From sequence record ON529850.1: 64,000 nucleotides of DNA, one strand, 5' to 3'. The translations under genes and the position numbers were made by a program. How positions within the stretch are numbered: the first letter of the stretch is position 1; every line of letters begins with the position of its first letter. Below the pieces are notes generated by a model. The model was not told the origin of the DNA, did not search any database, and worked only from the letters and a program-made list of their open reading frames with translations. This document shows, in pieces, positions 38,272 through 56,194 of this stretch.

Positions 38272-38275
38272 CCGA

Positions 38276-41107: not shown

Positions 41108-41215
41108 AGTCAAACGGTGTCCGTGAAAAAGGCTCTGCCCAGCAAAAACCGCTGTCAAAACAGAGCCTTAGAGGTATTGAGAAAGGGTTGTCACTGTAAC
41201 CAAATCAGGCGCGAA

Positions 41216-41232
41216 CGTCAAGAATTACAACA
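41216..41232 (-). promoter_or_regulatory. Conserved 17-bp promoter box (TGTTGTAATTC-TTGACG) upstream of nrdA
   Basis: Identical copy at 63136-63152; includes the -35 hexamer; -10 TACAGT at 17 bp. Confidence 0.6.
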
Positions 41233-41282
41233 GTCAATGTTGAAGATTGATTCCTTGACATCCGCCCTGAAAATTATGTGAC

Positions 41283-41528
41283 TCAACGCTCGTCGGGGAA
41301 CTTCAGGTTGGCGGCCTTCAGGATGTCTCTGACATTGCAGAGCTTTCCATCCAGGGTGAACCCCAGCTTGGTCTCCTTCATGCGCGGTCCGAGAATGGCC
41401 TGAGCCTGCTCCATCAGCGGCGGCGGATCGTCGAAGGGGACGACCGGGTGGTTGTCTTCGCGGGGGAGACGAAACTTGAGGTTCGGATTTTTACCGTCGG
41501 CGTCCGCCGCTTGGGGTTTACGGGCCAC
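41283..41528 (-). CDS. Hypothetical protein
   Basis: Packed ORF. Confidence 0.55.
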   Translation of the reverse strand: MARKPQAADADGKNPNLKFRLPREDNHPVVPFDDPPPLMEQAQAILGPRMKETKLGFTLDGKLCNVRDILKAANLKFPDER

Positions 41529-41663
41529 TCAGAAGGCCTCCAGATAGGCAGGAGCTGTGACAGGCGCGCCGCCGCCGCACTGCATCAGCAGCAGGCCGGC
41601 GCCCATGAGGATCGCCAGAAGCGCCAGGCGCCGGCGAGGAGGGGTCGAATAGGTCGAAACCAT
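41529..41663 (-). CDS. Small 44-aa membrane/lipoprotein-like peptide
   Basis: RRR-hydrophobic-LLMQCG signal-like; GAGGGG RBS; fills the gap exactly. Confidence 0.5.
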   Translation of the reverse strand: MVSTYSTPPRRRLALLAILMGAGLLLMQCGGGAPVTAPAYLEAF

Positions 41664-41664
41664 T

Positions 41665-42045
41665 TCAGGCACCCCTCACACGGTCGGGATAGCCGGTCGT
41701 CTGGCCCGACGCGCACACCTTGAGGATGCGATGCGGCGGATAGTGCGTGAGCACGCCGTCGCGCACCGAACGATAACCGGTCGCAACGATCGCCGAGACG
41801 TGCTCGCGCACCTTCTCGCCAGCCACGACATCGTATTCAAAAACGACGCCGTTATCGAGGTAGACGGAAATCACGACGGTCGTAGCCGCCGGCTGGGCGA
41901 CAGCCGACGTATCTTTGCGGGTCTGCGGCGGCTGAACCCAGGGGGCTCCCCCGCCGCCGATATACGGGTGTCCCCCGCCGGTCAGATAGGGCGGCCAACC
42001 GTGCCAGAGCGCACCCGTCGTTTCATAACGACAGTGGCTCATCAT
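41665..42045 (-). CDS. Hypothetical protein
   Basis: Packed ORF; C-terminal VISVYLDNGVVFEY...YPPHRILKV domain. Confidence 0.55.
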   Translation of the reverse strand: MMSHCRYETTGALWHGWPPYLTGGGHPYIGGGGAPWVQPPQTRKDTSAVAQPAATTVVISVYLDNGVVFEYDVVAGEKVREHVSAIVATGYRSVRDGVLTHYPPHRILKVCASGQTTGYPDRVRGA

Positions 42046-42437
42046 TCGGCGGCCTTTTCTTCGGCGATGTCGGTGAAGGCGCCGGCGAGCGCTTCGTTTC
42101 CGGCCGCCACAGCGGCGTCGACATCTTCACCGGCGTCGATCTGGGCGTTGACGTTCCGCAGGGTCTCGCTGACCAGGCTCATGGCTTCGATCAGGGCCGG
42201 ATGTTCGCCGCGCACCAGGGTGTTCAGCGCCAGGGCGACGACGTCGACGATGGACAGAGGATGCGACTTTCCCGGATCGAGCGCTTCCATGCGGGCGCCG
42301 TGCAGGCCCATGTTGACGGTGAAGCCGCCGTTCTCGCCTTCGGTAAAGGAGATGATAGACGTGGGGCGGTCAGGCAGGGTCACGGCGCTGCGGGCGGCCT
42401 TACGTCGTTCGATGCGCGATTTGGATGCGGTGGTCAT
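42042..42437 (-). CDS. Hypothetical protein
   Basis: ATG 42437 chosen. Confidence 0.55.
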   Translation of the reverse strand: MTTASKSRIERRKAARSAVTLPDRPTSIISFTEGENGGFTVNMGLHGARMEALDPGKSHPLSIVDVVALALNTLVRGEHPALIEAMSLVSETLRNVNAQIDAGEDVDAAVAAGNEALAGAFTDIAEEKAAE

Positions 42438-42462
42438 GGGTGGTTTACTCGTGATGCGCCGG

Positions 42463-42759
42463 TCAGCTCTGAGTCTGATCCAGCAAGGTGGTGATGCGAT
42501 TGCAGGCGTCGATTTCGGAGATCGGCCCCGTCTTGAGCAGCTCATCCATCCGGCGGCTGATGGTGCCGTCTTCATCCAGCGTCATGACCGCCAGGATAAA
42601 GAGTCCCGCCAGAGAAACGGTCTTACGGATTTCCGGTTTTTGCGGCAGATCGACGATCAACTCGACGTCTTCAGCGCCGTCAGCGCCGATGTCGTAGGCC
42701 TGCAAGGCGAACCGACGAAGCAGCTCAGGATCAAACGTCAGTTCGGTCGGGGTAGGCAT
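42463..42759 (-). CDS. Hypothetical protein
   Basis: GGAG RBS before ATG 42759. Confidence 0.55.
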   Translation of the reverse strand: MPTPTELTFDPELLRRFALQAYDIGADGAEDVELIVDLPQKPEIRKTVSLAGLFILAVMTLDEDGTISRRMDELLKTGPISEIDACNRITTLLDQTQS

Positions 42760-42872
42760 AATGCGGCTCCGAAGGGATTGCCGTGAACTTTGACAATCAG
42801 TGTCATGGAAACTGTTAGAGGTCAACCGATAAATCGAAAAAAGTCCAACAGTTTCCGTAACATAACCTGAGG

Positions 42873-43163
42873 TTACGAATACCGCTCGGCGCGGCTCTGG
42901 AGTTCCGGATCGCGTGGCGACTGGGTCTCGAAAACAAAGGGCGGCGTCGGAATCGGCGTCCACCACTCATGGTATCCAGGCCAGCCGCCCAGATTGATGA
43001 CCTGTTCGAATTCGCCGATCGACAGGACATAGCCTCGGCCCATATCGAGAGGCGTCCCCACATAGGGCGCCTCCGTCACCGGACAGGTCCACCACAGGAC
43101 GTCGCCCATGTCCTCATGCCATTCACTGATGTGACGCGCCGTCCCTGCGGCGGGGCTCTCCAT
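42873..43163 (-). CDS. Hypothetical protein
   Basis: TGATG coupling to thyX. Confidence 0.55.
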   Translation of the reverse strand: MESPAAGTARHISEWHEDMGDVLWWTCPVTEAPYVGTPLDMGRGYVLSIGEFEQVINLGGWPGYHEWWTPIPTPPFVFETQSPRDPELQSRAERYS

Positions 43164-44098
43164 CACAGACACTCGTTCGGGACGAATTTGCGGAACTGAG
43201 CGAAACCCTGGAAGTTGCCCTGGACCCAGTCCGGCTCATCCATCATGGCGATGCGCGCCTGGTGCTCCAACGGTGAGGCGTGCAGCGGCTCCGCGCCGGC
43301 CAGGCGCAGGTAGAGCTCCAGATCGGTGTCGATCTCGGGACGCTTGCCGTCATGCTTGGAGTAACTGACACGGCAGCAGCGCGCCGTCGAGATCGCCAGC
43401 AGCAGCGCCGTTTCCGGCGTCACGCGCTCGAACAGACCGTTCATGTTGTCGACCGAGCACAGCGTGTCGATGATGGTGACCGCGAAGTCGCTGAAGCGAC
43501 GGCGATTGACCAGATCGGCGACATCGGCGCGGTCCTGTTCCGTCACATAGGGCAGGTGCCATTCGCCCTCGCCCAGCACCTTCGGCTGCGCTTCGGCGCG
43601 GGCCTGCTTGATCGCCTGGGCCAGGTGCATGATTTCGTCCTGGGCGTCGGTGTGATCGCGCAGGGCGTCGAAGTTCGACCAGTTGGTGGCGGTGACCACC
43701 ACCTCGATATAGCCGAACCATTCCAGAGGGCGATTGACCCATTGTTTGTGGATGTTCAGCCCGTCCTTGGCGGCGAGAAGGCGCGTCTTCTCCAAAATGA
43801 AGTCGGCCATTTCGCGCCAGATCAGCTCCGCCTCGGCCTGCTTTTCCGCCGTCAGGAAACCGCCCGGCTGCATGCCCGGCTGATTGACGCGGAACTTCGG
43901 CACATAGATGTCGGCGTCGCGCACCGTCAAGGAGGTGTGCGGGATGGCGCGGCTGGAAGAAGCGTTGCGAGAGAAGACCCGGTGGGTCATGAAGTCGGCA
44001 TGCACCATACGCGGGTAGCGCAGCTGCAAGGTGTCGATGCGTTCGCCGTCCTCGGTCATGGAGGAAGCGATGGATTTGGCGGTGATTTGCGGGATCAT
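43163..44098 (-). CDS. thyX: Flavin-dependent thymidylate synthase
   Basis: FMTHRVFSRNASSSRAIP, NRPLEWF, HASPLEH. Confidence 0.88.
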   Translation of the reverse strand: MIPQITAKSIASSMTEDGERIDTLQLRYPRMVHADFMTHRVFSRNASSSRAIPHTSLTVRDADIYVPKFRVNQPGMQPGGFLTAEKQAEAELIWREMADFILEKTRLLAAKDGLNIHKQWVNRPLEWFGYIEVVVTATNWSNFDALRDHTDAQDEIMHLAQAIKQARAEAQPKVLGEGEWHLPYVTEQDRADVADLVNRRRFSDFAVTIIDTLCSVDNMNGLFERVTPETALLLAISTARCCRVSYSKHDGKRPEIDTDLELYLRLAGAEPLHASPLEHQARIAMMDEPDWVQGNFQGFAQFRKFVPNECL

Positions 44099-44106
44099 GT
44101 CCTGCC

Positions 44107-44667
44107 TCAGTAAGAAATGGCGTCGAGCAGGAGCGCCTCGCCGGCCTGGTGGAGGTCCGCGACGGTGCGCTCGTTGTAGATGGTCCAGTCCGCTTCGACT
44201 TGATCGATCTCGATCTCGGACTGGTGTTGCGAGTAGAGGTCGTTGCGCGTGCGTCGCGGATCGACCACCTTGATGATCCGGCCGCCCATGGCGCGGATCA
44301 TCGACGCCTCATTGACGAACCGGCAATCCGAGCACACCACGCCCGGCGCCCCGGCCTGGATCGCCGCATCGGCCGAACGCCGGAAGGCCTCGACCCAGGT
44401 GTCGTCCAGGTAGGCTCGGAACATCTCGGTGCCGATGCGTTGCATCAGCTCTCGCGGCGACTTGTAGGGATAACGCTGAAGCGGCGTTTCCTTCAGGACC
44501 GGGTCCAGCATCTCCTTCATCGACACGCCGTAGACGGTGGTGCACGCCTCCCGCAGCGGATCAGCGAAGTTGACATGGGCGTAGCCGCGCCGCGTCAGAA
44601 CTTCAGCCAGGGTGGATTTGCCGTGGCCGCGTTTGCCGGTGATCGCCACGAGGGGGTAGGGACGCAT
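44107..44667 (-). CDS. Deoxynucleoside monophosphate kinase
   Basis: ITGKRGHGKST, FADPLRE, PRELMQRIGTE, SDCRFVNE, H.SE. Confidence 0.9.
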   Translation of the reverse strand: MRPYPLVAITGKRGHGKSTLAEVLTRRGYAHVNFADPLREACTTVYGVSMKEMLDPVLKETPLQRYPYKSPRELMQRIGTEMFRAYLDDTWVEAFRRSADAAIQAGAPGVVCSDCRFVNEASMIRAMGGRIIKVVDPRRTRNDLYSQHQSEIEIDQVEADWTIYNERTVADLHQAGEALLLDAISY

Positions 44668-44682
44668 GTGATCGCACTCGCA

Positions 44683-46029
44683 CTAGATGAGGATTTTGAT
44701 GGTTTCGGCCGCGCGGGTGATGCCGGTGTAGAGGTGCTTGTCCGCGTCCTCGCGGAAGCTGCTCGACTCGTCGATCAGGACGATATGGTCCGACTGCGAC
44801 CCCTGATAGTTATGCACCGTCAAGGCGGCGGCGAAGTCCAGCTGGATCAGACGCTGCTTAGCCTTGTAGGCGCTGCGGCTGTCGGTGGTGAAACTGTTCT
44901 TCTTGGTCGTGTAGTGCTCTTCGAACAGGCCCTGGAACACGGCCTTGTCCTGATAGGTGGCGCCGTCTTCATCCGTGAAGGACATCCGACAGGCGGTCTG
45001 TCCGGGACGAAGCGTGACTTCTTCGGTCAGGCACGTCACCAGGGCGCCGTTCACCAGGGCCGGGTGTTCCTTGGAGTTCTTGCGCACAATCAGAGGCTCG
45101 CCGCCGATCGGTCCGACCGGCAGGCCTTCACGCACCATGCGCGTCACCTTCCAGCGCGTCTTGTTGGTGCCGCACAGCACCTGAGGCGCCTCGGCTTCGG
45201 GGTCTCTCAGGCGACCGTGGTAGGAATCGACCACCCAGTCGACGTCATAGTCGGAGCGATACGCCACCTCGGCGCGGAGCACGCCCGCCGGATCGCGGTA
45301 TTCGCCGCGCGGCAGGTCCTTGCCCTGGCGCGCCAGGGTGGCGAGATGAATGATCGGGTTGTCGGCCGCCTGACGATGGATTTCCGTCAGGAAGAAGTCC
45401 GGGTCGCCCGCCGTCAGGCCAGGCTTGTCGCCGACCGGCGGCAGCTGCCCAGGGTCGCCCATGGCGATGACCGGCACGCCGAACGACAACAGGTCTTGCG
45501 CCATCTGCCAGCCGACCATGGACGATTCATCGACCACGATGACTTCAGCCAAGGCGATGGGGCTGTCGACGTTCAGCTGGAAGTTGATCTTGTCTTCGAT
45601 GTAGACGTTCTCAAGGTCCGCTTCCAGGCGCTGGATCGCGCGCATGATTCGCTCCAGGGCCGCCGCGTCGCCGCCCTGTTTGATCAGCTTGTCGCGGTCC
45701 ACCTGGTGGGCGTAGAGCTCGCTTTCCAGCTGCGCGACCGGGGCAGGTTTTGCGCGATAGATGGCCGAGTGGATCGTGGTCGCGATCGAATTCGGATAGT
45801 GCTGCGCCCGCAGCTTGTTGCGCATGATCTTGGCCGCCTTGCCGGTCGGCGCGCAGAAGGCGACCTTGTGGGGATCAAACCCCAGGTCTTCCAGAATGAA
45901 CGGAAGAATGGTCGACTTACCCGTCCCGGCGTAACCGCCGATATAGGTCAATTTCTCAGGGTATGCGCCGCGCAGTCGCGACACCACGGTGCGCACCGCA
46001 TCGCCCTGGTGTTCGGAAAGTGTGGTCAT
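44683..46029 (-). CDS. RecD/Dda-like SF1B DNA helicase
   Basis: GGYAGTGKST, APTGKAA, VDESSM, GDPGQLPPV, EIHRQ, TVHNYQGSQ, YTGITRA. Confidence 0.9.
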   Translation of the reverse strand: MTTLSEHQGDAVRTVVSRLRGAYPEKLTYIGGYAGTGKSTILPFILEDLGFDPHKVAFCAPTGKAAKIMRNKLRAQHYPNSIATTIHSAIYRAKPAPVAQLESELYAHQVDRDKLIKQGGDAAALERIMRAIQRLEADLENVYIEDKINFQLNVDSPIALAEVIVVDESSMVGWQMAQDLLSFGVPVIAMGDPGQLPPVGDKPGLTAGDPDFFLTEIHRQAADNPIIHLATLARQGKDLPRGEYRDPAGVLRAEVAYRSDYDVDWVVDSYHGRLRDPEAEAPQVLCGTNKTRWKVTRMVREGLPVGPIGGEPLIVRKNSKEHPALVNGALVTCLTEEVTLRPGQTACRMSFTDEDGATYQDKAVFQGLFEEHYTTKKNSFTTDSRSAYKAKQRLIQLDFAAALTVHNYQGSQSDHIVLIDESSSFREDADKHLYTGITRAAETIKILI

Positions 46030-46100
46030 ATCCGGGCGTGTTCATCTTAACACCCGACGCCCGTCGATCTTGACGATCGGTTCCGTCAGGATTGGAGTCG

Positions 46101-46135
46101 AAAAGAAAGCCCCGCCGCCGAAGCGGCGGGGCGTT
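46101..46135 (-). terminator. Terminator after the SSB-like gene
   Basis: GCCCCGCCGC-UUCG-GCGGCGGGGC plus U-tract on minus. Confidence 0.88.
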
Positions 46136-46148
46136 CACTCAAGGTCGC

Positions 46149-47003
46149 TTAGAAGCGGCGACCACGAGCCGGCGCAGCGGCGGGAGCCGCAGCCGCCGGG
46201 GCGGGCTTGGGCTCTTCAGCCGGGGCGGCGTTCGCCGCACGGCCGGCGCCGGTCGACAGCGGCGCTTCACGGCGACCGCCACGACGGGCCGGTTCAGCCG
46301 GCACTTCTTCGACGACGGCTTCTTCGATTTCCGGAGCCGGCAGAGCCGCACGCTCTTCGACGGCGCCGCCGCCCATGGCGTCTTCATAGTCGTCCGGAGC
46401 GCCTTCCTGATAGGAGAGGAACTCCTCGCGGGTGATCCAGCCGACGATGCGGAATTCCGGAGCGTGCTTGCGCAGCTTGCGGCCGCCTTCCTTCGGCGTG
46501 AACTCGAAGGTGGTCGAGCCCATCGACACGACCGGGACCATGCCGGGGTTCAGCTTGAACTGACGGCCGAAGTCCTTGATCACCGCTTCGAGCGCGCGGC
46601 TCTTGGACTTGTTGTTCGCCTGGAACAGCAGGGTCAGGGCTTCGCCCTCGATCGTGGTGAACTCGATCGTCTTCTGTTCCGACCAGCCGTCGTCCGGGCC
46701 ATAGGGGCCGTGATCGGGCAGGTGGCCTTCCACCGGCGGCTTGCCTTCGGCGATGCCCAGCATGATCTCTTCCTGGACCTTGCCGCCCTTCCAGCAAATC
46801 CAGCCGCGCTTGAAGCTGTCGAGGTCCATGGCGGCCTGGGTGCCCGCCTCGAACGGCGTGTCGTCGGCGCCGTAGACGTAGGTGCCGTCGTTGCCGCTGA
46901 ATTTCAGGAACAGCTTGTTGCTGCCGCCGCCGCTGTAGCTCTGGGCCTCAGCGGCCAGCGCGGCGTAGTAATCCTCGTGAGAGGTGATGAGAGCATTGCT
47001 CAT
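46149..47003 (-). CDS. Probable single-stranded DNA-binding protein
   Basis: LFLKF...G.Y..G, GWICW, GWSEQ, PEFRIVGW pattern of phage SSB-like proteins; acidic/Ala-rich tail; replication-module context. Confidence 0.6.
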   Translation of the reverse strand: MSNALITSHEDYYAALAAEAQSYSGGGSNKLFLKFSGNDGTYVYGADDTPFEAGTQAAMDLDSFKRGWICWKGGKVQEEIMLGIAEGKPPVEGHLPDHGPYGPDDGWSEQKTIEFTTIEGEALTLLFQANNKSKSRALEAVIKDFGRQFKLNPGMVPVVSMGSTTFEFTPKEGGRKLRKHAPEFRIVGWITREEFLSYQEGAPDDYEDAMGGGAVEERAALPAPEIEEAVVEEVPAEPARRGGRREAPLSTGAGRAANAAPAEEPKPAPAAAAPAAAPARGRRF

Positions 47004-47009
47004 ATGGGG

Positions 47010-47272
47010 TCTGACTCTAACTCTAAACCTAACTACTAGGTCTATTTCTAAGGGGTGCCCGGCCAGTAACCCGGCCGGGCATGCTAAGGCTTCGTCTATG
47101 CCTAACTGCTAGTCGCTGCTTCTTATTACTATCGGCTAACTGACTAAATCTAAACTACTACACTACTCGACACTTTTCAACTAACTTCTACACCTAACCA
47201 GAACTATTATTCTAACTCTAGGTTACTACTCTACTAACCGCTAACCACTAAATACTAACTGACTTCTAGGTT
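47010..47272 (-). repeat. Low-complexity CTA (UAG on transcript) repeat tract with one GC hairpin
   Basis: About 31 CTA triplets counted by hand in about 260 nt, mostly CTAAC/CTAC/CTAAA; hairpin TGCCCGGCC-AGTAACCC-GGCCGGGCA near 47056-47081. Confidence 0.9.
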
Positions 47273-47277
47273 ACGCT

Positions 47278-48372
47278 TTACTCTTCAGGGCCTTTTGGAC
47301 CGTTCTCCCGGAACGTGAGGCGATCGTGACCGTCCGACGTCTTGGTGAATTCCTCCACCGGAAGCCCAGCGACCCGCATAGCTTCGACATCGTAAGTCGT
47401 CCTGCCCTTGATCCAGGAGAGGGACACCTTGGCGAATCCCGGAACCTCCGCTCTTCGCACCCCTGTTTGCCGGAACCATTCCTTCAACCTTTCGGTCGCT
47501 TTCCTGTGTTCCGTCTCCGAGGCCTTGCGAGCGTCGGCGGCCGCACGTTCATCCCGCAGGATGGCCTCGAATTCTTCCATGATCGGCAGCGGCGTATTCT
47601 CGAAGTTGGCGTGACCGCTCGTCGGGGTCGCCGCCGCCGTGGCCTTGGCGCACGCGCTGGTGAAGGGGCAGTAGTCGCAACCACCCTCCACCTTACCTTC
47701 GGGAAAAATGTCGCTGGCGTTCTTTATAGTGTAGACGGATCGCGCTCTTTCCTTCGCGGCGTCGTAGGTCCTCTGATCGAACGGGACCACGAAGATTTCG
47801 ATGTCGTCAAAGAAAGAAGCGTCGATGTAAACGATCACAGCATAGGCGGGCTTATACTGCGTCGTTTCACGCGTAATACCCATCTGGATCATCACTTGCC
47901 CCCGGTGAATGCTTTTCTCTTCGCGGAGATTTACGCGGGGGTCGATGGATTTGATCTCGAAATTGAAGCACCCCGCACCGCCCAGGCTGGGAATGCCGTA
48001 GAGCGCGAGGGCGTCGTCGTCGGCGTCGATCACCAGTCCGTCCGGCGTGGCGGTCAGAGGGGCGTCCGGCGCCTTGAGCGTCTGCTGATTGTCGCCGCCC
48101 CAGATCAGGCGCGTGTCGTAGTAGTAGTTCTCCAGGAACCACTTCACGCCCGGCTCGGCGAAATACTGCTCAATCAGGTCGCCGCGTTGCAGGGCGCCCC
48201 AGCTGTCCTTGTAGTCCGAATTCTTCTCGCCGCCGTTCTTGGCGAACCAGGCCTTACGCAGACAACCGAACGCCTCGGAAGCCCCCATGGTCTTGGAGCG
48301 GTCGTGCGCCCAGACCTTCTGGTGACCCTTGACAAAGGTGTCGTAGGCTTCCTTGAAGTCGATAACGGCCAT
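47278..48372 (-). CDS. PD-(D/E)xK Cas4/RecB-like exonuclease
   Basis: ASEAFGCLRKAWF, TPDG, FEIKS, Q..IQM, CDYCPFTSAC. Confidence 0.82.
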   Translation of the reverse strand: MAVIDFKEAYDTFVKGHQKVWAHDRSKTMGASEAFGCLRKAWFAKNGGEKNSDYKDSWGALQRGDLIEQYFAEPGVKWFLENYYYDTRLIWGGDNQQTLKAPDAPLTATPDGLVIDADDDALALYGIPSLGGAGCFNFEIKSIDPRVNLREEKSIHRGQVMIQMGITRETTQYKPAYAVIVYIDASFFDDIEIFVVPFDQRTYDAAKERARSVYTIKNASDIFPEGKVEGGCDYCPFTSACAKATAAATPTSGHANFENTPLPIMEEFEAILRDERAAADARKASETEHRKATERLKEWFRQTGVRRAEVPGFAKVSLSWIKGRTTYDVEAMRVAGLPVEEFTKTSDGHDRLTFRENGPKGPEE

Positions 48373-48401
48373 AAAATTACGTGACTCAATACCCGTCGCG
48401 A

Positions 48402-48989
48402 TTAAGCCGCGCGGGCAAAATCCTGGAGGTAGTAGAAGAGATCGCGGCAATCCTTGACGTCGCCCACAGCGCGGTGAGCGGCCGTCGGCGCGCGATCCAG
48501 AAGATGCGGGATCGCCAATTCCAGCTTGGGCCAGGCATAGCCCTTCTTGCCGAACTTGGAGGGGAACTTGCAGACCGGAACCGCCGCCAGCATGGTGCAG
48601 AACGGCTTCTTGCCGGCGAACACGTCAATCTTGGGATTGCCCGAGATGAGCCGCGCCGCATTGTTGATCACGTTGACATCGAACTCGATATTGTGCGCCA
48701 CCATCAATTCGGCCGCCATGACCATGTCGCAGAACACGTCCAGCGCGGCGTTCTCGCCGACGCCGATCGCCTGAGACTTCTCCGTCGTGGTGCCGTGCAC
48801 CTTAGCGGAGGCGTCCGGGATCGGCTGATCCCGATACACGATCAAGTCGATGCGCATGACCTCTTCACGCGCCTCCAGGTCTTCCAGGATGGCGGCGATC
48901 TGAACGATGCGCGGTTGATCTTCATGACCGCACGGAAGATTCTTGTCCCACAGGCCGGTGGTCTCGGTGTCGAAGAACAGCCCCAACAT
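48402..48989 (-). CDS. DEDDh 3'-5' exonuclease (DnaQ-like)
   Basis: FFDTETTG, VAHNIEFD, FCTM, AHRAVGDV. Confidence 0.9.
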   Translation of the reverse strand: MLGLFFDTETTGLWDKNLPCGHEDQPRIVQIAAILEDLEAREEVMRIDLIVYRDQPIPDASAKVHGTTTEKSQAIGVGENAALDVFCDMVMAAELMVAHNIEFDVNVINNAARLISGNPKIDVFAGKKPFCTMLAAVPVCKFPSKFGKKGYAWPKLELAIPHLLDRAPTAAHRAVGDVKDCRDLFYYLQDFARAA

Positions 48990-49462
48990 CAGGCGTTGTC
49001 CTCTTCACTGCGCTTGCGGATCATATCGTGCAGGTAGGAGACGCTGGAGGCGATGTCGCTCTGAACCTTCGGGTCAGGCTTGTGCGCGTCTTCAGCCGCC
49101 TTGGCGGCGCCTTGCAGGGCCAGCTGCGCGTAGAGCGCCAGGAACTGGACCGCATCCATCAGACGCTGGGTCTTCAGCGCCGATCGCGCCGTCAGGTAGT
49201 CGAGCATCAGGGCGCGGATGCCCATGAACAGGAACCAATAGACGCCGAAACCGATGACGGCCCAGCGCAGACCTTCAGAGACCGACTTCACCCAACCGAA
49301 CCCGGCCAAAACCAGCCAGGCGGTGAAGATGAGGCCGCCGCCCACCATGATCAGGGAGATCGAGGCGCGGAACTGGTCGCTGATCGAACGAAAAGCCACG
49401 CCGAGGTGCACAGTGGGCTGCGCGTCTTCCGCCGGTTTTTCGGGAGTGGTGGTGTCAGTCAT
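48989..49462 (-). CDS. Membrane protein (two TM helices)
   Basis: Two hydrophobic segments; GAGAG RBS. Confidence 0.6.
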   Translation of the reverse strand: MTDTTTPEKPAEDAQPTVHLGVAFRSISDQFRASISLIMVGGGLIFTAWLVLAGFGWVKSVSEGLRWAVIGFGVYWFLFMGIRALMLDYLTARSALKTQRLMDAVQFLALYAQLALQGAAKAAEDAHKPDPKVQSDIASSVSYLHDMIRKRSEEDNA

Positions 49463-49522
49463 GTCGCTCTCAAAGGGGACGGTAGTTGTTAACCATTTCT
49501 GGCAGTGATTGTCAATATTTCC

Positions 49523-49549
49523 CACACTCGGGTAGTGGCACAGTTTGAA
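49523..49549 (+). repeat. Left TSD plus TIR
   Basis: CACACTCG|GGTAGTGGCACAGTTTGAA. Confidence 0.9.
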
Positions 49550-49807
49550 TTCAGGCCGCCCAGCCGACGCTCGCACCCCTAGCATGCGTCTTGATCAGTC
49601 TTCCTCGTTCGCGGCGATCCCCGCTGCGGTGAAGGAGGTCGGCATGAAAGCGATCAACGAAATCACGTTGCGGCGCGGCCCGCATGAATATCGGATTAGG
49701 CAATCCGAGCGGGTAGCCAACGACCGGTTCGAAGGGCTGATCGATGGTGTGGTCCTGATTGAAGCCGATTCCCCGGCGCGGGCGCTGGGCGCATTGATCG
49801 CCAGCCC

Positions 49808-50395
49808 TCAGCTTTCCCCGTCGGTAGCCTCGGCGGGCGCCGTAGGCGACTGAAGCCCCATGGAATGGGCCACCAACATGTTCGACACCTTCAGGGCCTC
49901 GGCGACATCTCGCATGGCCTTGAGGGAGTCGAGATAGAGGTTGTCGCGATCAATGAAGCCCTGGGAGATGTAGGCGTCCGTCAGGATTTCACTCTCGGAG
50001 GCCTTAAGCCCAACGGCCTTCATCATGCCGTGGATCATCGTCGCCTGCTTGGCGTTCATTCGCTGGTTGTGGTCCGGTCGGCGATCCTCTGAGACCTCTT
50101 GGCGGACCAGTTCCAGATATTCCCGTCGCGCCTGCATTACATCTGCGCAGTCGTTGAACTCGACCTCGATCAAGTTGACCGCCATCAGATAGGTCGGATC
50201 AGAGGGTAGCCGTCGCGTTGTCAGGATCATCCTTAATACCTGGGTCCGCGCATCGGAGCGCCGGCGGCGCCGATCGATCCACAAGGTAACCAGAACGGCC
50301 GACAAGGGACCAGCGAACACGCCGGCCAGCGTTAGGAGTTCGTAGGCCTTAAGGCCGAGGAAGATGGGGTCGGCAGCAGCAGCGGATGCGTTCAT
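49808..50395 (-). CDS. DUF6680-like protein (passenger)
   Basis: N-terminal TM helix; VLRMILTTRR...LMAVNLIEVEF pattern. Confidence 0.6.
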   Translation of the reverse strand: MNASAAAADPIFLGLKAYELLTLAGVFAGPLSAVLVTLWIDRRRRRSDARTQVLRMILTTRRLPSDPTYLMAVNLIEVEFNDCADVMQARREYLELVRQEVSEDRRPDHNQRMNAKQATMIHGMMKAVGLKASESEILTDAYISQGFIDRDNLYLDSLKAMRDVAEALKVSNMLVAHSMGLQSPTAPAEATDGES

Positions 50396-50439
50396 GAATC
50401 GACGATACCCGACTCACTGAGCAATCAACCACGGGAATA

Positions 50440-51669
50440 TCAACGCTTCGGCTTACTGCCACCTCGTCCACGCCCGCTCCCAAGGCAGTAGTAGTCGCCC
50501 AAGCAAATCCGGCACTCCGTCACTTCGTCCGGAACCAGATCGTAGGCGAGGTCGCGGGCCTTCTCGATGGTCTCGCACCTGAACTTCTGCGATCCGCCCT
50601 TCTTGCTCGCGCGGTCGGGCGCGTCTCTGAGGTGCTTGCAGGAAGAAGCGTGAATCTTCGCGTATCGATGCGTAAGGCTGCACATCACTACGAACGGCGC
50701 GTCGTCCGCCGGTGGAGCCGAAGGCGGGCACACGACCTCCTCGGCCTCTTCTTCCCCCAAGGACGCGCCCTTCGTAGCGGCCCTGTAGTCGTCCACGAGA
50801 TCAACGAAGTCGCGCCACGTCCATCCACTGTCATCGATCCCAGACGCCACGGCCGGCGTCGTCTTCAGCGTCATGTGGATGCGGATGAAGTTGTGGTAGA
50901 ACACATACAAAGCGACCGACCGCTTCAAATTCGTCAGCGACTTTGAAAACAGGGTCGTCTTCCTCGCGAGACGTCCCAGGTTCTGCCTGAACTTCTGGAA
51001 GAACGACTCGATGTGGTTCGTCGTGACCAGCGCCATGTCATGGGTGCCGCTCCTCACCTCAGGCGGGGATTTCTCTCGTCGTGCACGCCGCTTTTTCGGC
51101 TGCTGTCCCACCCCGAGGTATTCCTCGATCACTTCCTGCTGCTGATCGTCCTGCTTCTTCACAGTGGCGTAATCGATCTCGCCGCCCCAGGCGCTCTCGA
51201 TGGCGCCGAAGTAGGGGTGGTGAGAGTCCGTCGTCATCTGAAGTCGCCTCGGGCATCGGGCCTTGAGGTCGTTGATGAACGCCTTGGCGTCTTCGTGCCC
51301 TCGGCCACCGACATGCCAAGCCACCACCAGCTTATTGACGGCGTCGATGGCGATCCAAATCCAGAACACGCCCATGCCGGGCGGTGCGCGCATCTTTCTG
51401 GCCCAAAGGGTTCGCCCCCGAATCCCGACGTATGCGTGGAGTTCATCGGCCTCGATAAGGGTCGACGGTAAATCCCGCATCCGGTCGTCGAGGAATTCAA
51501 TGGCGGTGTCGCCGGCATCGGCCAGCAGCTTCTGGATCGTCGTGCGGCTCGGGTGGCCTGATTTTCCGGTATTGCCTTCCTTCGTTCGATGCAGGCCACG
51601 GATCGACATCCGCTCCATCATGTCCTGGAGCAGTGCGACCTGTTTCTCTGGGCTCAATCGGTTGACCAT
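50440..51669 (-). CDS. tnp: IS1-family-like DDE transposase with C-terminal Cys/His extension
   Basis: IEADELHAYV (D), WIWIAID..KLVVAWHVGGR, TTDS (D), NHIES (E), YHNFIRIH.TLKTTPA. Confidence 0.85.
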   Translation of the reverse strand: MVNRLSPEKQVALLQDMMERMSIRGLHRTKEGNTGKSGHPSRTTIQKLLADAGDTAIEFLDDRMRDLPSTLIEADELHAYVGIRGRTLWARKMRAPPGMGVFWIWIAIDAVNKLVVAWHVGGRGHEDAKAFINDLKARCPRRLQMTTDSHHPYFGAIESAWGGEIDYATVKKQDDQQQEVIEEYLGVGQQPKKRRARREKSPPEVRSGTHDMALVTTNHIESFFQKFRQNLGRLARKTTLFSKSLTNLKRSVALYVFYHNFIRIHMTLKTTPAVASGIDDSGWTWRDFVDLVDDYRAATKGASLGEEEAEEVVCPPSAPPADDAPFVVMCSLTHRYAKIHASSCKHLRDAPDRASKKGGSQKFRCETIEKARDLAYDLVPDEVTECRICLGDYYCLGSGRGRGGSKPKR

Positions 51670-52061
51670 CGATCAGCGTATGCGTCGGGATCGAAACAGA
51701 GGTCAACGCCTCTTATTTCCATAATTCTGGAATTCTCGAATTATGTGTTCTCTTGAGCACAGGCGGATAAGCGAGAAGTCAGCGGCAGTTCGGGGCGACA
51801 CTAAGGCTCTGTAACTAATTAGCTAATGCGGCACATTTCAGTAAGTGTGACATGATTTTCAGCAGTGATTGACAACATTTACGTCATTCGTTGCTTGAAA
51901 TCTATTCACTCAGATGGATGGGTGTGGCGGTATGTCGCAGACAATCCTTGTAAAACTCGGTGGGGTGAACTCCAAGCACCTCGGCTAGTTTCCCCAGAAC
52001 CGCCACGGTCGGATTTCCCTCGCCGCGCTCGATCCGCCCCAGATGCCACGCCGGCGCCATC

Positions 52062-52307
52062 GTGGCGGATCAAATCGTCATCCCAGACGGGAGCGTGCGC
52101 GGTTTGGTCGTGGAGGTCCGCTTCGACGGCTACCCGCACCGTTTCCGTCTCGATCTCGCGCCTTCGGGGACCTACGCTCCGACGCCGGTGGACATCCCGG
52201 CCGTGCCCGCTCAGGTCACCCAGAGCATGATGCGCACCGCAGAGACGTGGCATTGGACCGATGGTCCGCCGCCGACCACGTTCCAGGGAATGCCGATCAT
52301 CGATTGA
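52062..52307 (+). CDS. Hypothetical protein (passenger)
   Basis: GTG-start ORF upstream of arsR. Confidence 0.35.
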   Translation: MADQIVIPDGSVRGLVVEVRFDGYPHRFRLDLAPSGTYAPTPVDIPAVPAQVTQSMMRTAETWHWTDGPPPTTFQGMPIID

Positions 52308-52371
52308 AACGGCACAGACGGCCCGTCGCGAGCAGGCTTGCGAACTTCCTTAGTTCCACTATCTTGGAATC

Positions 52372-52707
52372 ATGGAAACCGAATCTGCAATTCTCGCCCT
52401 GGCCGCTCTGGCGCAGCCTACGCGCCTCGAGACTTTCCGCCTGTTGGTTCGTCACGAACCCGAGGGATTGCCTGCCGGCGAGATCGCGGACGGCTTGACG
52501 GTGCCGGCTAACACCATGTCGGCGCACCTGGGCGTTCTGTCCCGCGCTGGCCTGATCAGTTCCGAGCGGCGCAGTCGATCAATCATCTATCGCGCCGACC
52601 TGGACCGCCTTCAAGCGCTGGTTCTGTTCCTGCTCAAGGACTGCTGCCAGGGCCGCGTCGATCTGTGCGAGCCGCTGCTGGCTGAACTCGCGACCTGCCG
52701 CGCCTGA
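52372..52707 (+). CDS. arsR: ArsR-family repressor (C-terminal Cys type)
   Basis: LAALAQPTRL..FRLL, NTMSAHL..L.RAGLI, KDCCQG...LC. Confidence 0.95.
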   Translation: METESAILALAALAQPTRLETFRLLVRHEPEGLPAGEIADGLTVPANTMSAHLGVLSRAGLISSERRSRSIIYRADLDRLQALVLFLLKDCCQGRVDLCEPLLAELATCRA

Positions 52708-52714
52708 GGAAATC

Positions 52715-53137
52715 ATGGACGTCGTCATCTATCACAACCCCGCCTGCGGGACGTCTCGCAACGCCCTGGCCCTAATCCGCCATGTCGGGATCGAGCCGCA
52801 CGTCATCGAATATCTGAAGACGCCGCCGAGCCGCGCGATGATCGTGGGACTGGTCGAGCGCATGGGCGTCCCGCTGCGCAGCCTTCTTCGCGAGAAGGGC
52901 ACGCCTTTCGCTGAACTGGGTCTCGGCGATTCAGCCATGAGCGATGACCAGTTGCTCGACGCCATCGAGGCGTACCCTGTCCTGCTGAACCGTCCCATCG
53001 TCGTGTCCCCGCTGGGCGTGAAGCTGTGTCGGCCGTCCGAAGCGGTTCTCGAAATTCTGCCGCCTGAGGGCCTGAAGCCCTTCACCAAGGAGGACGGCGA
53101 AGTCGTCATCGACGCCGAGGGGCGGAGGGTCCGCTGA
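52715..53137 (+). CDS. arsC: Arsenate reductase (glutaredoxin-dependent)
   Basis: [26 protein letters not shown]. Confidence 0.95.
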
Positions 53138-54222
53138 TGGTCGACGCCGTGATTACTGACCAGCCGAAACGCCGCCTGTCCTTCCTCGACCGCTGGCTAA
53201 CGCTGTGGATTTTCGCCGCCATGGCGCTGGGTGTGCTGTTGGGCACGGTCGTGCCGGGGCTTCCCGCCTGGATCGACAGCCTGTCGGTCGGGACGACCAA
53301 CGTCCCGATCGCCATAGGCCTGATCCTGATGATGTATCCGCCGCTGGCGCGGGTGAAATACGAGGAACTGCCGCGCGTCTTCGCCGACAAGCGCGTGCTG
53401 CTGCTGTCCCTGTTCCAGAACTGGGTGCTGGGGCCGGTGCTGATGTTCGCCCTGGCGGTCATTTTCCTGCGCGACCAGCCAGAATACATGACCGGCGTCA
53501 TCTTGATCGGTCTGGCCCGCTGCATCGCCATGGTGCTGGTCTGGAACCAGTTGGCGCGTGGCGACAACCAGTATGTGGCGGGTCTGGTCGCCTTCAACTC
53601 GATCTTCCAGATCGCCTTCTTCAGCCTCTACGCCTGGCTGTTTCTGACCGTGCTGCCGCCCCTGTTCGGGCTGGAGAGCAGCGTGGTCGAAGTGAGCGTC
53701 TGGACCATCGCCGGCGCCGTCCTGGTCTATCTGGGCCTGCCCTTCCTTGGCGGTTTCCTGACCCGGCGCGCGCTGGTCGCGAGGAAGGGGAGCGACTGGT
53801 ATGAAACGCGCTTCTTGCCGCGCATCGCGCCGATCACCCTGATCGCCCTGCTGTTCACCATCGTCGCCATGTTCAGCCTGAAGGGCGGCGAAGTGGTCGC
53901 CCTTCCGCTGGACGCCCTGCGCATCGCCATCCCGCTGACGATCTACTTCTTTGTCATGTTCGTGGTCAGCTTCCTGATGGGACGCCTGATCGAGGCGGAC
54001 TATCCGCGCACCACGGCCCTGGCCTTCACCGCCGCCTCCAATAATTTCGAACTGGCGATCGCCGTCGCCATCGCGGCTTTCGGACTGGCCTCGCCCGTCG
54101 CTTTCGCGGCGGTCATCGGCCCGTTGGTCGAGGTGCCCGTGCTGATCCTGTTGGTCTCGGTCGCCCTGTGGCTGGGCCGCCGCTACTTCCCCGCGACCGC
54201 CCCGAAGAAGGGCGCCTGCTGA
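53137..54222 (+). CDS. acr3: Acr3 arsenite efflux transporter
   Basis: [48 protein letters not shown]. Confidence 0.95.
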
Positions 54223-54662
54223 TGGGCTTCAACGTCGTGGAGTTGCCCCAGCCCACCCCCGACCTGATCACCGCGCTGGAGGCCGCCGGCCTGCCGACGG
54301 ATGACCTCCATGAGCCCGGCCGTCGTTTCTTTCGTTTCAAGGACGATGCCGGACTGATCGGCTACGGCGGGCTGGAGCAGATCGGTCCTGATGCCCTGAT
54401 CCGCTCCATGGTCGTCGTCGATGACCGTCGCGGCGCCGGCTTGGGCGCGGCGCTCCTGTCCTGGCTGGAAACTGAGGCGGCCGATCGGAAAGCGTCCGCC
54501 CTCTACCTGCTCACGACCTCTGCCGCCGCCTTCTTCCAGCAGCACGGCTACGCCGCCCTGCCTCGTTCCGCCGCGCCGCCCGCCATCGCCGCTTCCAAGC
54601 AGTTCAGCGCCCTGTGCCCGGCTTCGGCGGCTTTCATGTTCAAGGAGTTGCGCCCCCAATGA
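54222..54662 (+). CDS. arsN2: GNAT N-acetyltransferase ArsN2
   Basis: [35 protein letters not shown]. Confidence 0.85.
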
Positions 54663-55411
54663 CCCGCCTTCGCGTCCTGCCCGATCCCGACCATATGCCC
54701 GCGCTCGACCCGGCCTACCTGTCCAGCCAACCAGCGCTCGGCCTCGGTCCGAACGACCATCCGCCCCGCATCCTGCTGCTCTACGGCTCGCTGCGGGATC
54801 GTTCCTTTTCCCGTCTGTGCGTCGAGGAGGCCGCGCGCCTTCTGCGCTTCATGGGTTGTGAGACCCGCATCTTCGATCCGTCCGATCTGCCTCTGACTGA
54901 TCAGGTCGACTACGACGACCATCCCGCCGTCCACGAACTGCGCGAACACGCCCTGTGGTCCGAGGGCATGGTCTGGAGCAGTCCCGAGCGCCACGGCCAG
55001 ATTTCCGGGATCATGAAACTTCAGATCGATCACCTGCCGCTCAACATGGGCGGCATGCGCCCGACCCAGGGCCGCACCCTGGCCGTCATGCAGGTCTCGG
55101 GCGGCTCGCAAAGCTTCAACGCCGTCAACACCCTGCGCCTGCTCGGCCGCTGGATGCGGATGATCACCATCCCCAACCAGTCCAGCGTGGCCAAGGCCTT
55201 CATGGAGTTCGACGAGAATGGCCGCATGAAGCCGTCCAGCTACTACGACCGCATCGTCGACGTGATGGAGGAACTGGTCCGCTTCACCATCCTGACGCGC
55301 GCCCATGCCGGCCAGTTGGTGGATCGCTATTCGGAACGGAAAGTAGCAGGCGTCCCGATCGATGCGGTCCGCGATCTTTCGGCTATCGCGATTGGGGCGG
55401 CGGCGGCCTAA
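54659..55411 (+). CDS. arsH: NADPH-dependent FMN reductase ArsH
   Basis: [39 protein letters not shown]. Confidence 0.95.
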
Positions 55412-55632
55412 CGGGCTTTCGGGGCGGCTGCAAGGCGAGCCGCCCGGCGCGCTGCCAAGCGTTCCGCGATCGCCCTGATTTTCTCCCGCGACGGGCGCGG
55501 CGCGCTGCGCCCCTCCAACTCCACGGGGTCGCAGACGGTTTCCGGATCGACATAGGGGGAGCCGTCCGGGTTCACGTTGCCCACCAGCTTTTCGAGTTCG
55601 TGGGCCAGCGCCTCGCGCTCATCCTTGTTCAT
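55408..55632 (-). CDS. Hypothetical protein (passenger)
   Basis: GGAGAAGG RBS; convergent with arsH. Confidence 0.45.
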
Positions 55633-56165: not shown

Positions 56166-56192
56166 TTCAAACTGTGCCACTACCCACACTCG
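56166..56192 (-). repeat. Right TIR plus TSD
   Basis: TTCAAACTGTGCCACTACC|CACACTCG. Confidence 0.9.
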
Positions 56193-56194
56193 TA

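Follow-up and report, generated by a model that had tools for sequence, protein, structure and literature searches.

The operator of T4 gene 32 consists of a folded 5' element followed by more than 40 nt of less structured RNA, in which UUAAA/UAAA repeats and the ribosome-binding site are found (PMC535899). Arrays of short words are present in other leaders as well: the TRAP leader holds about 11 (G/U)AG triplets separated by spacers of 2-3 nt, and the HutP leader holds two sets of three UAGs with 4-nt spacers, together with a terminator. Both protein families are known from Bacillus-type organisms. At the level of DNA, DnaA-trios are contiguous triplets in a 3-nt phase that lie beside DnaA boxes and are read as single-stranded DNA by an oligomerising protein. 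On the protein side, phiC31 gp3 and TG1 gp25 are recombination directionality factors that are phage SSBs; the gp3-type protein of TG1 binds ssDNA, not dsDNA, in vitro, and its further structural hits are a BRCA2 OB domain and then gp32 (PMC11795197).

Here we describe a UAG-rich tract of 274 nt (positions 47004-47277) in the genome of Brevundimonas phage vB_BpoS-Gurke, a phiCbK-like phage with a genome of 321.5 kb (321,510 bp). Positions are those of a 64,000-nt stretch of record ON529850.1, referred to hereafter as the window. On the minus strand, an exonuclease gene is followed in the 5' to 3' direction by UAG array A, two hairpins, UAG array B, a gene for a 284-aa SSB-like protein and an intrinsic terminator (Table 1). 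The TAA stop codon of the exonuclease gene abuts the 5' edge of the tract, and the order of the exonuclease and SSB-like genes is kept in all relatives. The SSB-like gene has a Dda-like helicase gene as a neighbour and lies in a replication module with polymerase, helicase and exonuclease genes.

Table 1. Features of the UAG-rich leader and its flanking genes (positions in the window).
Feature	Position	Strand	Basis
GURKE_03260, upstream gene, Cas4/RecE-like recombination exonuclease	47278..48372	-	PHROG 434, E 1.3e-34; annotated CDS
UAG array A, 171 nt, 21 UAG	47107..47277	-	Triplet count, spacing, folding
Hairpin 1, small, flanked by UAG	47083..47106	-	Folding and relatives
Hairpin 2, 11-bp GC-rich stem, 4-nt loop	47056..47081	-	Folding and relatives
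UAG array B, 52 nt, 7 UAG, reaching the ATG	47004..47055	-	Triplet count
GURKE_03250, gene for 284-aa SSB-like protein	46149..47003	-	Predicted fold; PHROG 9528
Intrinsic terminator, 10 GC pairs and a tetraloop, then UUUCUUUU	46109..46132	-	Terminator scan

The minus (coding) strand of the tract contains 31 TAG triplets, compared to 6.2 ± 2.3 (maximum 15) in mononucleotide shuffles. This bears out an earlier note on this DNA, which had counted about 31 CTAs; the plus strand has 31. CTA, TAA and TGA occur only four, five and one times, respectively, on the minus strand. The base 5' of the TAG is T in 16 cases, G in 7, C in 4 and A in 4, and the GUUAG, GUAG and UUUAG contexts listed in the same note are a fair description of the array. 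The note had also called the tract AT-rich within a genome of different composition; its GC content is 0.43 while that of the genome is 0.63. Among all windows of the genome, the lowest in GC at 100 nt and the second-lowest at 250 nt fall in the tract. The densest 100-nt window of the genome, with 15 TAGs, is in the tract and the runner-up has 6. When the whole genome was searched on the minus strand with the pattern TTAG-N2-6-TAG-N2-6-TAG, 10 of the 11 matches fell inside the tract, and no other cluster of at least four closely spaced TAGs of this kind was found in the 64-kb window.

The triplets are regularly spaced. Distances from TAG to TAG peak at 6-7 nt, with spacers mostly of 3-5 nt, and 20 of the 30 intervals in Gurke measure 5-8 nt, against about 30% expected for random placement at the same density by an unscripted hand estimate. 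The mode in the other phages is 6 nt. In array A, which is poor in C, the words are mostly (U/G)UAG placed 5-8 nt apart. Folding of this part of the RNA is predicted to be unusually weak: the first 182 nt of the tract gave a minimum free energy of -35.5 kcal/mol compared to -68.8 ± 9.1 kcal/mol for 200 random windows of the same strand, and none of the 200 folded as weakly as array A. The local pairings predicted within array A are not retained in the related phage L050. A clear Shine-Dalgarno sequence was not seen in array B, and the adjoining genes likewise lack a clear one. Hairpin 1, the 6-7 nt spacing, the terminator after the gene and the lowest-GC 100-nt window of the genome had not figured in the earlier note.

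No plausible open reading frame was found inside or across the tract. Amber suppression or recoding was considered and rejected, as a CUA anticodon is absent from the 29 phage tRNAs and no reading frame crosses the tract. A search for sigma-70-type promoters found none in 46000-48600 and one weak site in 38000-57000; a match picked out by eye in array A (TTGAAA-17-TAGTTT, 8 of 12 positions) was set aside because its spacing differs in L050. An Rfam search with 46800-47500 at E values up to 10 returned noise (P15 at 15.7 bits, where the gathering score is 70). The terminator downstream of the SSB-like gene closes its transcription unit and is the strongest terminator-like site within 38000-57000. 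The gene order, with no terminator in between, suggests that the tract is co-transcribed with the SSB-like gene. Among sequencing runs searched with this stretch, no RNA run contained it and no run matched even half of its sequence words.

The hairpin that the note had placed about 55 nt before the ATG is real. The 3' end of hairpin 2 lies 52 nt upstream of the ATG at 47003. It does not have the makeup of an intrinsic terminator, being followed by ACCCCUUAGAAA without a U tract, and the terminator scan did not call it while calling the true terminator. A hairpin of 9-13 bp was found at this position in 14 of the 15 orthologous leaders that were folded, although the sequences are unrelated; the exception was Kikimora, in which the hairpin is visible in the alignment only. 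Between Gurke and L050, the stem shows a compensatory change from C-G to U-A.

Hairpin 1 has an AGGC/GCCT stem and the loop AUAGACGAA, and it can be extended by GUU.G/C.UAG pairs. The GACGAA of the loop is unchanged across nine aligned relatives. The arms of the stem vary yet pair (AGGC/GCCT, GGUC/GACC, GGAC/GUCC and AGACC/GGUCU); these were compared by hand because the MAFFT alignment puts the stem one base out of register from one lineage to another. Conservation of the AGACGAA loop suggests that hairpin 1 has a specific ligand. GACGAA occurs 386 times in the genome, as expected from Asp-Glu codons, and the hairpin-like matches elsewhere look like chance, so hairpin 1 was rejected as a dispersed genome element.

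The note had suggested checking relatives for conservation of triplet bias rather than of sequence, and this is what we observed. A UA(A)G array was present in all 13 of the close Dolichocephalovirinae-type orthologues checked (L022-L032, Bajun and CcrSC), with the adjacent GC hairpin in 12 of 13 (L028 was not folded). In each of the 13, UA(A)G density across the locus is at or near its maximum in the leader. The word itself differs by lineage, being UAG in Gurke, phiCbK and Colossus and UAAG in CcrSC, whose leader has no UAG and about 11 UAAGs but retains the hairpin and the AGACGAAGG motif. Stop codons in all frames, which the note had offered as a way to keep the tract free of ribosomes, do not explain why UAG is used almost exclusively or why the G of the CcrSC UAAG is conserved. 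From hairpin 2 to the start codon, most orthologues have one to five UAGs; array B is nearly identical among Gurke, Kikimora and L050. In these three phages the whole array is far longer than in the remaining relatives, and it is extreme in the Gurke lineage only. The leaders of phiCbK and Colossus rank among the most TAG-dense windows without coming first.

Comparison of Gurke with L050 and L051 showed how the array is maintained. The SSB-like proteins are 87% identical, the tracts 85% and the flanking genes 88%. The L050/L051 tract also contains 31 TAGs, of which 25 are shared with Gurke; six were lost and six gained. Random substitution of the tract yielded 20.7 ± 2.6 TAGs, with P = 0.0002 for 31 or more and P = 0.0016 for six or more gains. 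A constant count despite this turnover argues that the number of TAGs is under selection. Strand bias, stems that stay paired despite change, retention of the TAG count and the extension of the array up to the start codon together support function of the tract on a single strand.

The description of the downstream gene as SSB-like was supported by the predicted structure of its product. GURKE_03250 has a conserved N-terminal helix, an OB-type core (residues ~30-200), a disordered tail rich in Ala, Pro and Glu and a conserved C-terminal RGRRF. The model has pLDDT >90 across approximately residues 30-200, and the fold predicted for this core is like that of solved gp3/gp32-class SSBs. The best structural match was phiC31 gp3 (9teh_I, Z 9.4, rmsd 4.1, 151 residues aligned), followed by a BRCA2 OB domain (6.0), RB69 gp32 (4.3) and T4 gp32 (4.2), with Rim1 and many SSB/RPA OB domains also matching; the TG1 protein ranks its further hits in the same way (PMC11795197). 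By sequence, GURKE_03250 had no match in Pfam, including the Gp3-like family PF18897, or in the PDB, and an Atlas lead to PF18897 scored only 0.83. The protein has one Cys and therefore lacks the zinc site of gp32 and TG1. Its family is viral and large (2,958 clusters at 50% identity) and has no Pfam model. The N-terminal helix was predicted to dock on the core with an ipSAE of 0.72, compared to 0.10 for the best control; of 78 solved complexes 51 attain the docking mark, as do 2 of 108 mismatched pairs. Runs agreed in 86% or more of the contacts, with a partner pLDDT of 65 or higher. This docking could occur within one chain rather than between protomers. On the strength of the model, GURKE_03250 is likely a ssDNA-binding protein of the phage.

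The gene resembles those for phiC31 gp3 and TG1 gp25 in its product's best structural match and in its place in a replication module. It differs in lacking a sequence-level match in the PDB or Pfam and a zinc site, and in having a basic RGRRF end to the tail. Gurke is also a lytic phage, for which no use of a serine integrase is known. We know of no report of a UAG leader on a gp3-type gene. For the leader, the closer likeness is to the operators of T4 and RB69 gene 32: it belongs to a likely phage SSB gene, and weakly structured repeats of a short word, preceded by two conserved hairpins in the place of the folded T4 element, continue through the initiation region to the start codon. As with T4 gene 32, the product is an OB-fold, SSB-like protein by prediction and the gene lies beside a Dda-like helicase gene. 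The differences are also clear. The word is UAG (UAAG in CcrSC) and not UUAAA/UAAA, so the weak structure is shared and the repeat is not; two plain hairpins are predicted where T4 has a pseudoknot; the tract has 274 nt and 31 repeats, most of them 5' of the hairpins, compared to ~70 nt in T4; and any structural kinship of GURKE_03250 with gp32 is distant (Z ~4), without a zinc site. An operator of the T4 type needs the 52 nt of array B alone, and the 171 nt of array A are not explained by the T4 precedent.

Of the readings considered, the one we favour, tentatively, is that the tract is an RNA-level autogenous operator that is like that of T4 gene 32 but larger, built on a new motif and served by another family of SSB. 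The tract would then be the long 5' leader of the SSB gene, acting as single-stranded RNA: a weakly folding lattice of ~28 UAGs, one every 6-7 nt, interrupted by the two conserved hairpins and ending at the start codon. When free protein is in excess over the ssDNA at hand, the SSB-like product may bind this lattice cooperatively, with one protomer covering approximately one repeat and the hairpins serving to nucleate or bound the bound array. Bound protein would occlude the initiation region in array B, which has no Shine-Dalgarno sequence, and in a phage with 63% GC the tract would be the sole long stretch of RNA that resembles unstructured ssDNA. We infer both that the SSB-like protein binds the tract and that this binding represses translation. 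The site size of gp32-type SSBs is ~7 nt per monomer. SSBs are usually not sequence-specific, so a preference for UAG is put forward here as a hypothesis. A more specific form of the operator reading, which we regard as rather unlikely, is that the Dolichocephalovirinae SSB-like protein is a sequence-reading SSB whose protomers, joined in a cooperative filament, each read one UA(A)G per ~6-7 nt. The leader would then be a phased lattice and titrate free SSB with a very sharp threshold, and the word would co-evolve with the protein.

Several of the same observations could be accounted for by a module for RNA processing, stability and translation that has no dedicated repressor. Array A, weakly folded and A/U/G-rich, would let RNase E enter and cleave, releasing the SSB message from the operon transcript and leaving hairpins 1 and 2 as protective 5' stem-loops. 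Array B would be an unstructured landing pad for the ribosome or S1 on a gene that has no Shine-Dalgarno sequence and would need very high expression. Consistent with this, the SSB-like gene has hairpins on its 5' side and, on its 3' side, a terminator stronger than any other in 19 kb, no promoter was found in or just upstream of the tract, and array A folds unusually weakly. The neighbouring genes also lack a clear Shine-Dalgarno sequence, and open leaders would therefore matter in Gurke. The mRNA of T4 gene 32 is itself processed upstream and is very stable. However, openness and access for RNase E require richness in A and U alone and not a UAG or UAAG word held at a constant count, nor is a spacing of 6-7 nt needed. 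The conserved loop of hairpin 1 points to a specific ligand, and the motifs, judged by eye, appear to fit the published RN↓WUU preference of RNase E poorly. We consider this explanation unlikely.

The array might instead be bound by some other oligomeric RNA-binding protein, of the phage or the host, that takes one UA(A)G per subunit and controls read-through, stability or translation. The leader does resemble those of TRAP and HutP in being an mRNA leader with a strand-specific array of UAG-type triplets and short, non-conserved spacers. Periodic triplet arrays are a signature of ring-forming or oligomeric RNA binders, and the switch from UAG to UAAG between lineages fits a co-evolving reader. 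HutP sites, at UAG plus 4 nt, have a period of 7 (PMC2425495), near the 6-7 nt found here. Yet TRAP has 11 sites and HutP 6, far fewer than the 31 motifs here, the spacers are mostly longer than those of TRAP, and no alternation of terminator and antiterminator is visible because hairpin 2 has no U tail, unlike the terminator of the HutP leader. The phage genome has no homologue of TRAP (PF02081) or HutP (PF09021), and both the host and the phage lineage differ from those in which such leaders are described. The tract does not match a TRAP-regulated or a HutP-regulated leader as these are known, and the literal TRAP analogy drawn in the earlier note loses ground with the absence of the homologue from the phage. 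We hold binding by another protein of this kind to be distinctly unlikely.

The tract could also act as DNA, as an unwinding element or a zone of ssDNA initiation (an origin or a hot spot of lagging-strand priming) in which the 31 plus-strand CTAs are start sites for a primase or sites for a ssDNA initiator within the replication module. Some DnaG primases initiate at CTA, and origins can carry strand-specific trinucleotide arrays; TAG repeats are reportedly present in the Thermotoga DUE, and DnaA-trios are another such array. The tract shares with these one-strand TAG-type triplets and an AT-rich element. Its exceptionally low GC content, the polymerase, helicase, exonuclease and SSB genes around it and a turn of the local cumulative GC skew near 47 kb would all be in keeping with an origin, although the skew swings as widely throughout the genome. 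With a period of 6-7 nt and only three of the 30 intervals in 3-nt phase, the array is not a DnaA-trio; no DnaA box (up to one mismatch, 46001-48500) and no CtrA box (within ~1 kb) was found. The phage has no match to the DnaG zinc ribbon (PF01807), Toprim_4 (PF13662) or Prim-Pol (PF09250). With these homologues absent from the phage and no such boxes nearby, the primase or origin reading that the note had offered also becomes less likely. Furthermore, in every case the array stops at this gene's start codon and lies on its sense strand, and the most AT-rich regions of the phiCbK and Colossus genomes lie outside the leader. On balance, a DNA-level role seems improbable. That the tract is a functionless, degenerate microsatellite of 6-8 nt units, expanded by slippage in an AT-rich spacer of the Gurke lineage, is very improbable: TRF does find short period-7 and period-8 arrays in it and the arrays of Gurke, Kikimora and L050 are much longer than those of other relatives, but the TRF arrays cover only ~57 of 274 nt, the TAG count held through six losses and six gains (P = 0.0002), the tract diverges no faster than its flanks, and the feature recurs in 13 of 13 diverged orthologues amid unrelated sequence.

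In these much-used Caulobacter and Brevundimonas jumbo phages, an SSB could not be found, according to the phiCbK genome paper (PMC3556154). The GURKE_03250-type gene is the obvious candidate for the SSB of the phiCbK group. If autogenous control does act through its leader, the control logic of T4 gene 32 would have evolved independently a second time, here written in a simple, countable code (UA(A)G every 6-7 nt) that is easily mutated, and the leader would bear on the old question of how a 'non-specific' SSB picks its own mRNA. If the protein is in fact a sequence-reading SSB, the leader would define a new class of SSB operator and provide a recipe for finding the autoregulatory leaders of unannotated phage SSBs. 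Should the tract prove instead to be a DNA-level initiation zone, it would show where replication starts in these phages. A further use of the array might be as a compact, tunable part for translational control in high-GC alphaproteobacteria.

The window belongs to Brevundimonas phage vB_BpoS-Gurke (ON529850.1), a phiCbK-like jumbo siphophage of the Dolichocephalovirinae whose genome (321,510 bp) is described in PMC10070969; by blastn, 46149-48450 is 100% identical to that record. Between two minus-strand genes, at 47004-47277, its minus strand carries 31 TAG, 4 CTA, 5 TAA and a single TGA, where mononucleotide shuffles of the tract gave 6.2 ± 2.3 TAG and at most 15. The tract has a GC content of 0.43, compared to 0.63 for the genome, and includes the lowest-GC 100-nt window of the genome (GC 0.33). 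The earlier note had counted about 31 CTA triplets (UAG on the mRNA) in an AT-rich tract; this observation holds and is stronger than described there. Genome-wide, the densest 100-nt window, in the tract, contains 15 TAG and the next best contains 6. Ten of the 11 minus-strand matches to TTAG-N2-6-TAG-N2-6-TAG in the whole genome fall inside the tract, and no second cluster of this kind was found in the 64-kb window. No ORF of note crosses the tract, an Rfam search of it returned no match, and none of the 29 phage tRNAs reads UAG. Across the Gurke genome as a whole, the plus strand carries 2,113 TAG and the minus strand 912, a 2.3-fold difference. The asymmetry has the same direction in the related phage Papperlapapp, is reversed in phiCbK and Colossus, and probably reflects the dominant coding strand.

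Two hairpins divide the leader into array A, on the 5' side, and array B, which adjoins the start codon. Hairpin 2 is the GC hairpin that the earlier note had placed about 55 nt before the ATG. An intrinsic terminator stronger than any other in 19 kb lies downstream, and the SSB-like gene therefore closes a transcription unit within an otherwise co-oriented replication module. This terminator precedes the gene for a Dda-like helicase. No sigma-70-type promoter was found in the tract or just upstream, and we infer, as the simplest reading, that transcription enters the tract from upstream. The replication module also contains a 409-aa minus-strand ORF (50440-51669) with weak matches to IS1/DDE transposases.

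Features of the SSB-like gene and its leader (window position = ON529850.1 record position - 124,000)
Feature	Position	Strand	Details
Cas4/RecE-like exonuclease gene	ends 47278	minus	directly 5' of array A
Array A	47277-47107	minus	21 UAG
Hairpin 1	47106-47083	minus	stem AGGC/GCCT, loop AUAGACGAA
Hairpin 2	47081-47056	minus	11 bp, GUUA loop; then ACCCCUUAG, not a U tract
Array B	47055-47004	minus	7 UAG, up to the ATG at 47003
284-aa SSB-like gene	46149-47003	minus	end at 46149
Intrinsic terminator	46132-46109	minus	17 nt past the SSB-like gene; 10 GC pairs and UUUCUUUU

Successive TAG are most often 6-7 nt apart. Of the 30 distances in Gurke, 20 lie within 5-8 nt, compared to roughly 30% for random placement at the same density (a hand estimate, unscripted), and the mode is 6 in 11 other phages. 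Most UAG stand in the context (U/G)UAG(A/U). The first 182 nt of the leader fold with an MFE of -35.5 kcal/mol, while 200 random windows of the same strand gave -68.8 ± 9.1 kcal/mol and the weakest of them -39.3 kcal/mol. The local pairings that RNAfold draws within array A are lost in the nearest diverged relative, the metagenomic locus L050. Array A is therefore a weakly structured island in a strongly structured transcriptome.

In Kikimora, which is 98% identical over 46149-48450, the aligned leader region differs by three substitutions, and all of them spare the TAG. In the metagenomic loci L050/L051 (protein 87% identical) the tract is 85% identical, close to the 88% of the flanking genes, and has exactly 31 TAG: 25 in the same columns, six lost and six gained. 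Random substitution at the divergence of L050 would leave 20.7 ± 2.6 TAG in total (P = 0.0002 for at least 31; P = 0.009 for at least 25 shared; P = 0.0016 for at least six gained), evidence of selection on the number of TAG in the leader. Hairpin 2 shows a compensatory C-G to U-A change between Gurke and L050/L051.

In more distant phages the tract cannot be aligned, and the blastn match breaks into two pieces around it. The design is nevertheless kept in Papperlapapp, Colossus/CcrPW, phiCbK/Karma/Rogue/BL10, Bajun and six metagenomic viral contigs, with 5-14 TAG in the 110-200 nt before the orthologous ATG (locus background about 0.2-0.9 per 120 nt). Across 13 of 13 loci, the highest or nearly highest UA(A)G density of the locus falls in this leader; the earlier note had proposed checking whether triplet bias rather than sequence is conserved. 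A GC hairpin lies beside the array in all 12 loci folded of the 13 (all except L028), being 9-13 bp in each distant leader folded, with unrelated sequences. Hairpin 1 is common to nine leaders, with an invariant GACGAA in the loop and varying stems (AGGC/GCCT, GGUC/GACC, AGGUC/GGCCU, GGAC/GUCC, AGACC/GGUCU). The conserved loop and covarying arms point to a reader that recognizes a folded single strand, not duplex DNA. UAG is missing altogether from the 217-nt leader of CcrSC (protein about 40% identical), which has about 11 (C)UAAG and also contains CUAAGACGAAGG and the GC hairpin. Between lineages, then, the repeated word itself differs and the architecture is constant. Stop codons in all frames, suggested previously as a means of keeping the leader ribosome-free, would leave unexplained the near-absence of UGA, the usual stop codon in high-GC genomes, and the kept G of UAAG.

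The array is mostly absent from homologues below about 40% identity and is extreme only in the Gurke lineage; among TAG windows genome-wide the leader ranks top in Papperlapapp, tied second in phiCbK and outside the top five in Colossus. Papperlapapp (locus L002, 3883-3964, minus) has a duplicated GC hairpin with UAG in both loops (…GGCGCGUAGUCGGG…) and an A/C-rich spacer in place of the long upstream array. By this layout the upstream array is lineage-specific, and the hairpins and proximal array form the core.

A Pfam search of the 284-aa product returned no match, while PHROG 9528 ('nucleotidyltransferase') matched at 1e-82. Members of the family, for which Pfam has no model, are annotated 'nucleotidyltransferase' or 'polyribonucleotide nucleotidyltransferase'. 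Proteins of this large viral family, for which a profile search found 2,958 clusters at 50% identity, share an N-terminal helix (DYYAALAAEA), a core of about 170 residues and a C-terminal RGRRF, all three conserved, with a disordered tail, acidic and then Ala/Pro-rich, before the RGRRF. In the AlphaFold model pLDDT exceeds 90 over about residues 30-200. Its top match by Foldseek and an exhaustive aligner was phiC31 gp3 (9teh_I; E 5.6e-4, Z 9.4, rmsd 4.1, 151 aligned), followed by BRCA2 OB domains (6.0, 5.2), Rim1, RB69 gp32 (4.3) and T4 gp32 with Dda (4.2), and then by LEF-3, RPA and PRD1 P12. The TG1 homologue of gp3 gives the same ranking of fold matches and binds ssDNA, not dsDNA (PMC11795197). 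Neighboring genes encode a Dda-like helicase, a DnaQ-like exonuclease and a T7-like polymerase. SSB was undetectable in these phages according to the phiCbK genome paper (PMC3556154); judged by its modeled fold, the 284-aa product is probably the SSB missed there, and is the obvious candidate. Unlike gp32 and the TG1 protein it has one Cys, hence no zinc site, and its RGRRF tip is basic whereas those of E. coli SSB, T7 gp2.5 and gp32 are acidic. In docking, the N-terminal 30 residues were placed on core helix 132-148 with an ipSAE of 0.72 (best control 0.10), a level that 51 of 78 solved complexes attained, as did 2 of 108 mismatched pairs; contact agreement between runs was at least 86% and partner pLDDT at least 65. 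The predicted contact would fit a gp32-like N-terminal cooperativity contact, intra-chain and inter-protomer placement being indistinguishable.

AT-rich repeats also occur elsewhere in these genomes. The lowest-GC 250-nt stretch of Gurke, at record positions 321,164-321,400 (loci L020-L021, outside the window), holds two copies of an AT-rich unit of about 100 nt (…TTTACCCTACCCCTATCATGTGAAGTAAGTAAGTTTTATATGGTAG…) followed by another repeated unit, and may comprise strong promoters or a terminal or origin element. By far the AT-richest regions of phiCbK (NC_019405, 199,600-199,900; L063) and Colossus (NC_019406, 273,550-273,950; L078) have 26-31% GC per 100 nt and repeated units including CTAAAAGGTA…ATATTTAATACA and CCCTAACCTTACTAAAGCACTTCTCGACCATTAATTAACTA; in these two phages they are better candidates than the SSB leader for an origin or promoter cluster.

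The earlier note had offered an autogenous SSB operator, an array for a repeat-binding protein, or a priming or origin site; this interpretation is supported in part, in that the downstream gene product has an SSB-type fold. A module for processing, stability and translation that acts free of a repressor would account for the hairpins, the terminator and the open RNA, but we consider it unlikely, as a specific word at constant count and fixed period is left unaccounted for. It is improbable that a different oligomeric protein reads UAG; TRAP and HutP homologues were not found in the phage genome, though a new family or a host factor could fill that role. We give a similarly low probability to a DNA-level unwinding, priming or origin element. 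The tract does lie within the replication module and holds the most AT-rich 100 nt of the genome, but primase families were not detected in the phage, DnaA and CtrA boxes were not found nearby, the triplets are out of 3-nt phase, the array always adjoins the same start codon, and phiCbK and Colossus are AT-richest elsewhere. A neutral microsatellite is very improbable, given that TRF found no more than two short arrays, about 57 nt in all, and that the turnover statistics oppose drift.

Taken together, these features speak for a cis-acting element that is tied to the SSB-like gene and recognized in single-stranded form. The closest precedent worked out so far is the operator of T4 gene 32. Its 5' part is folded; the region after it, over 40 nt long and weakly structured, contains UUAAA/UAAA repeats as well as the ribosome-binding site and is coated cooperatively by gp32 once free protein accumulates (PMC535899). 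With two hairpins ahead of array B, the Gurke leader resembles this layout. The site size of gp32-type SSBs is roughly 7 nt, close to the UAG period of 6-7 nt. From this layout and period we propose, at somewhat less than an even chance and by analogy, autogenous translational control: the SSB-like protein would bind the leader cooperatively and so control translation of its own gene. The analysis establishes the anatomy of the leader, its uniqueness and conservation, selection on motif number, weak folding and the SSB-type fold of the product; we infer that the tract is transcribed, which protein binds it and in which direction the effect goes. UA(A)G would be the specificity word, one per protomer, and array A an extension that provides more binding sites and sharpens or buffers the response. 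We classify the tract as a putative operator in the leader of an SSB gene, similar in type to that of T4 gene 32 and made of a phased UA(A)G array.
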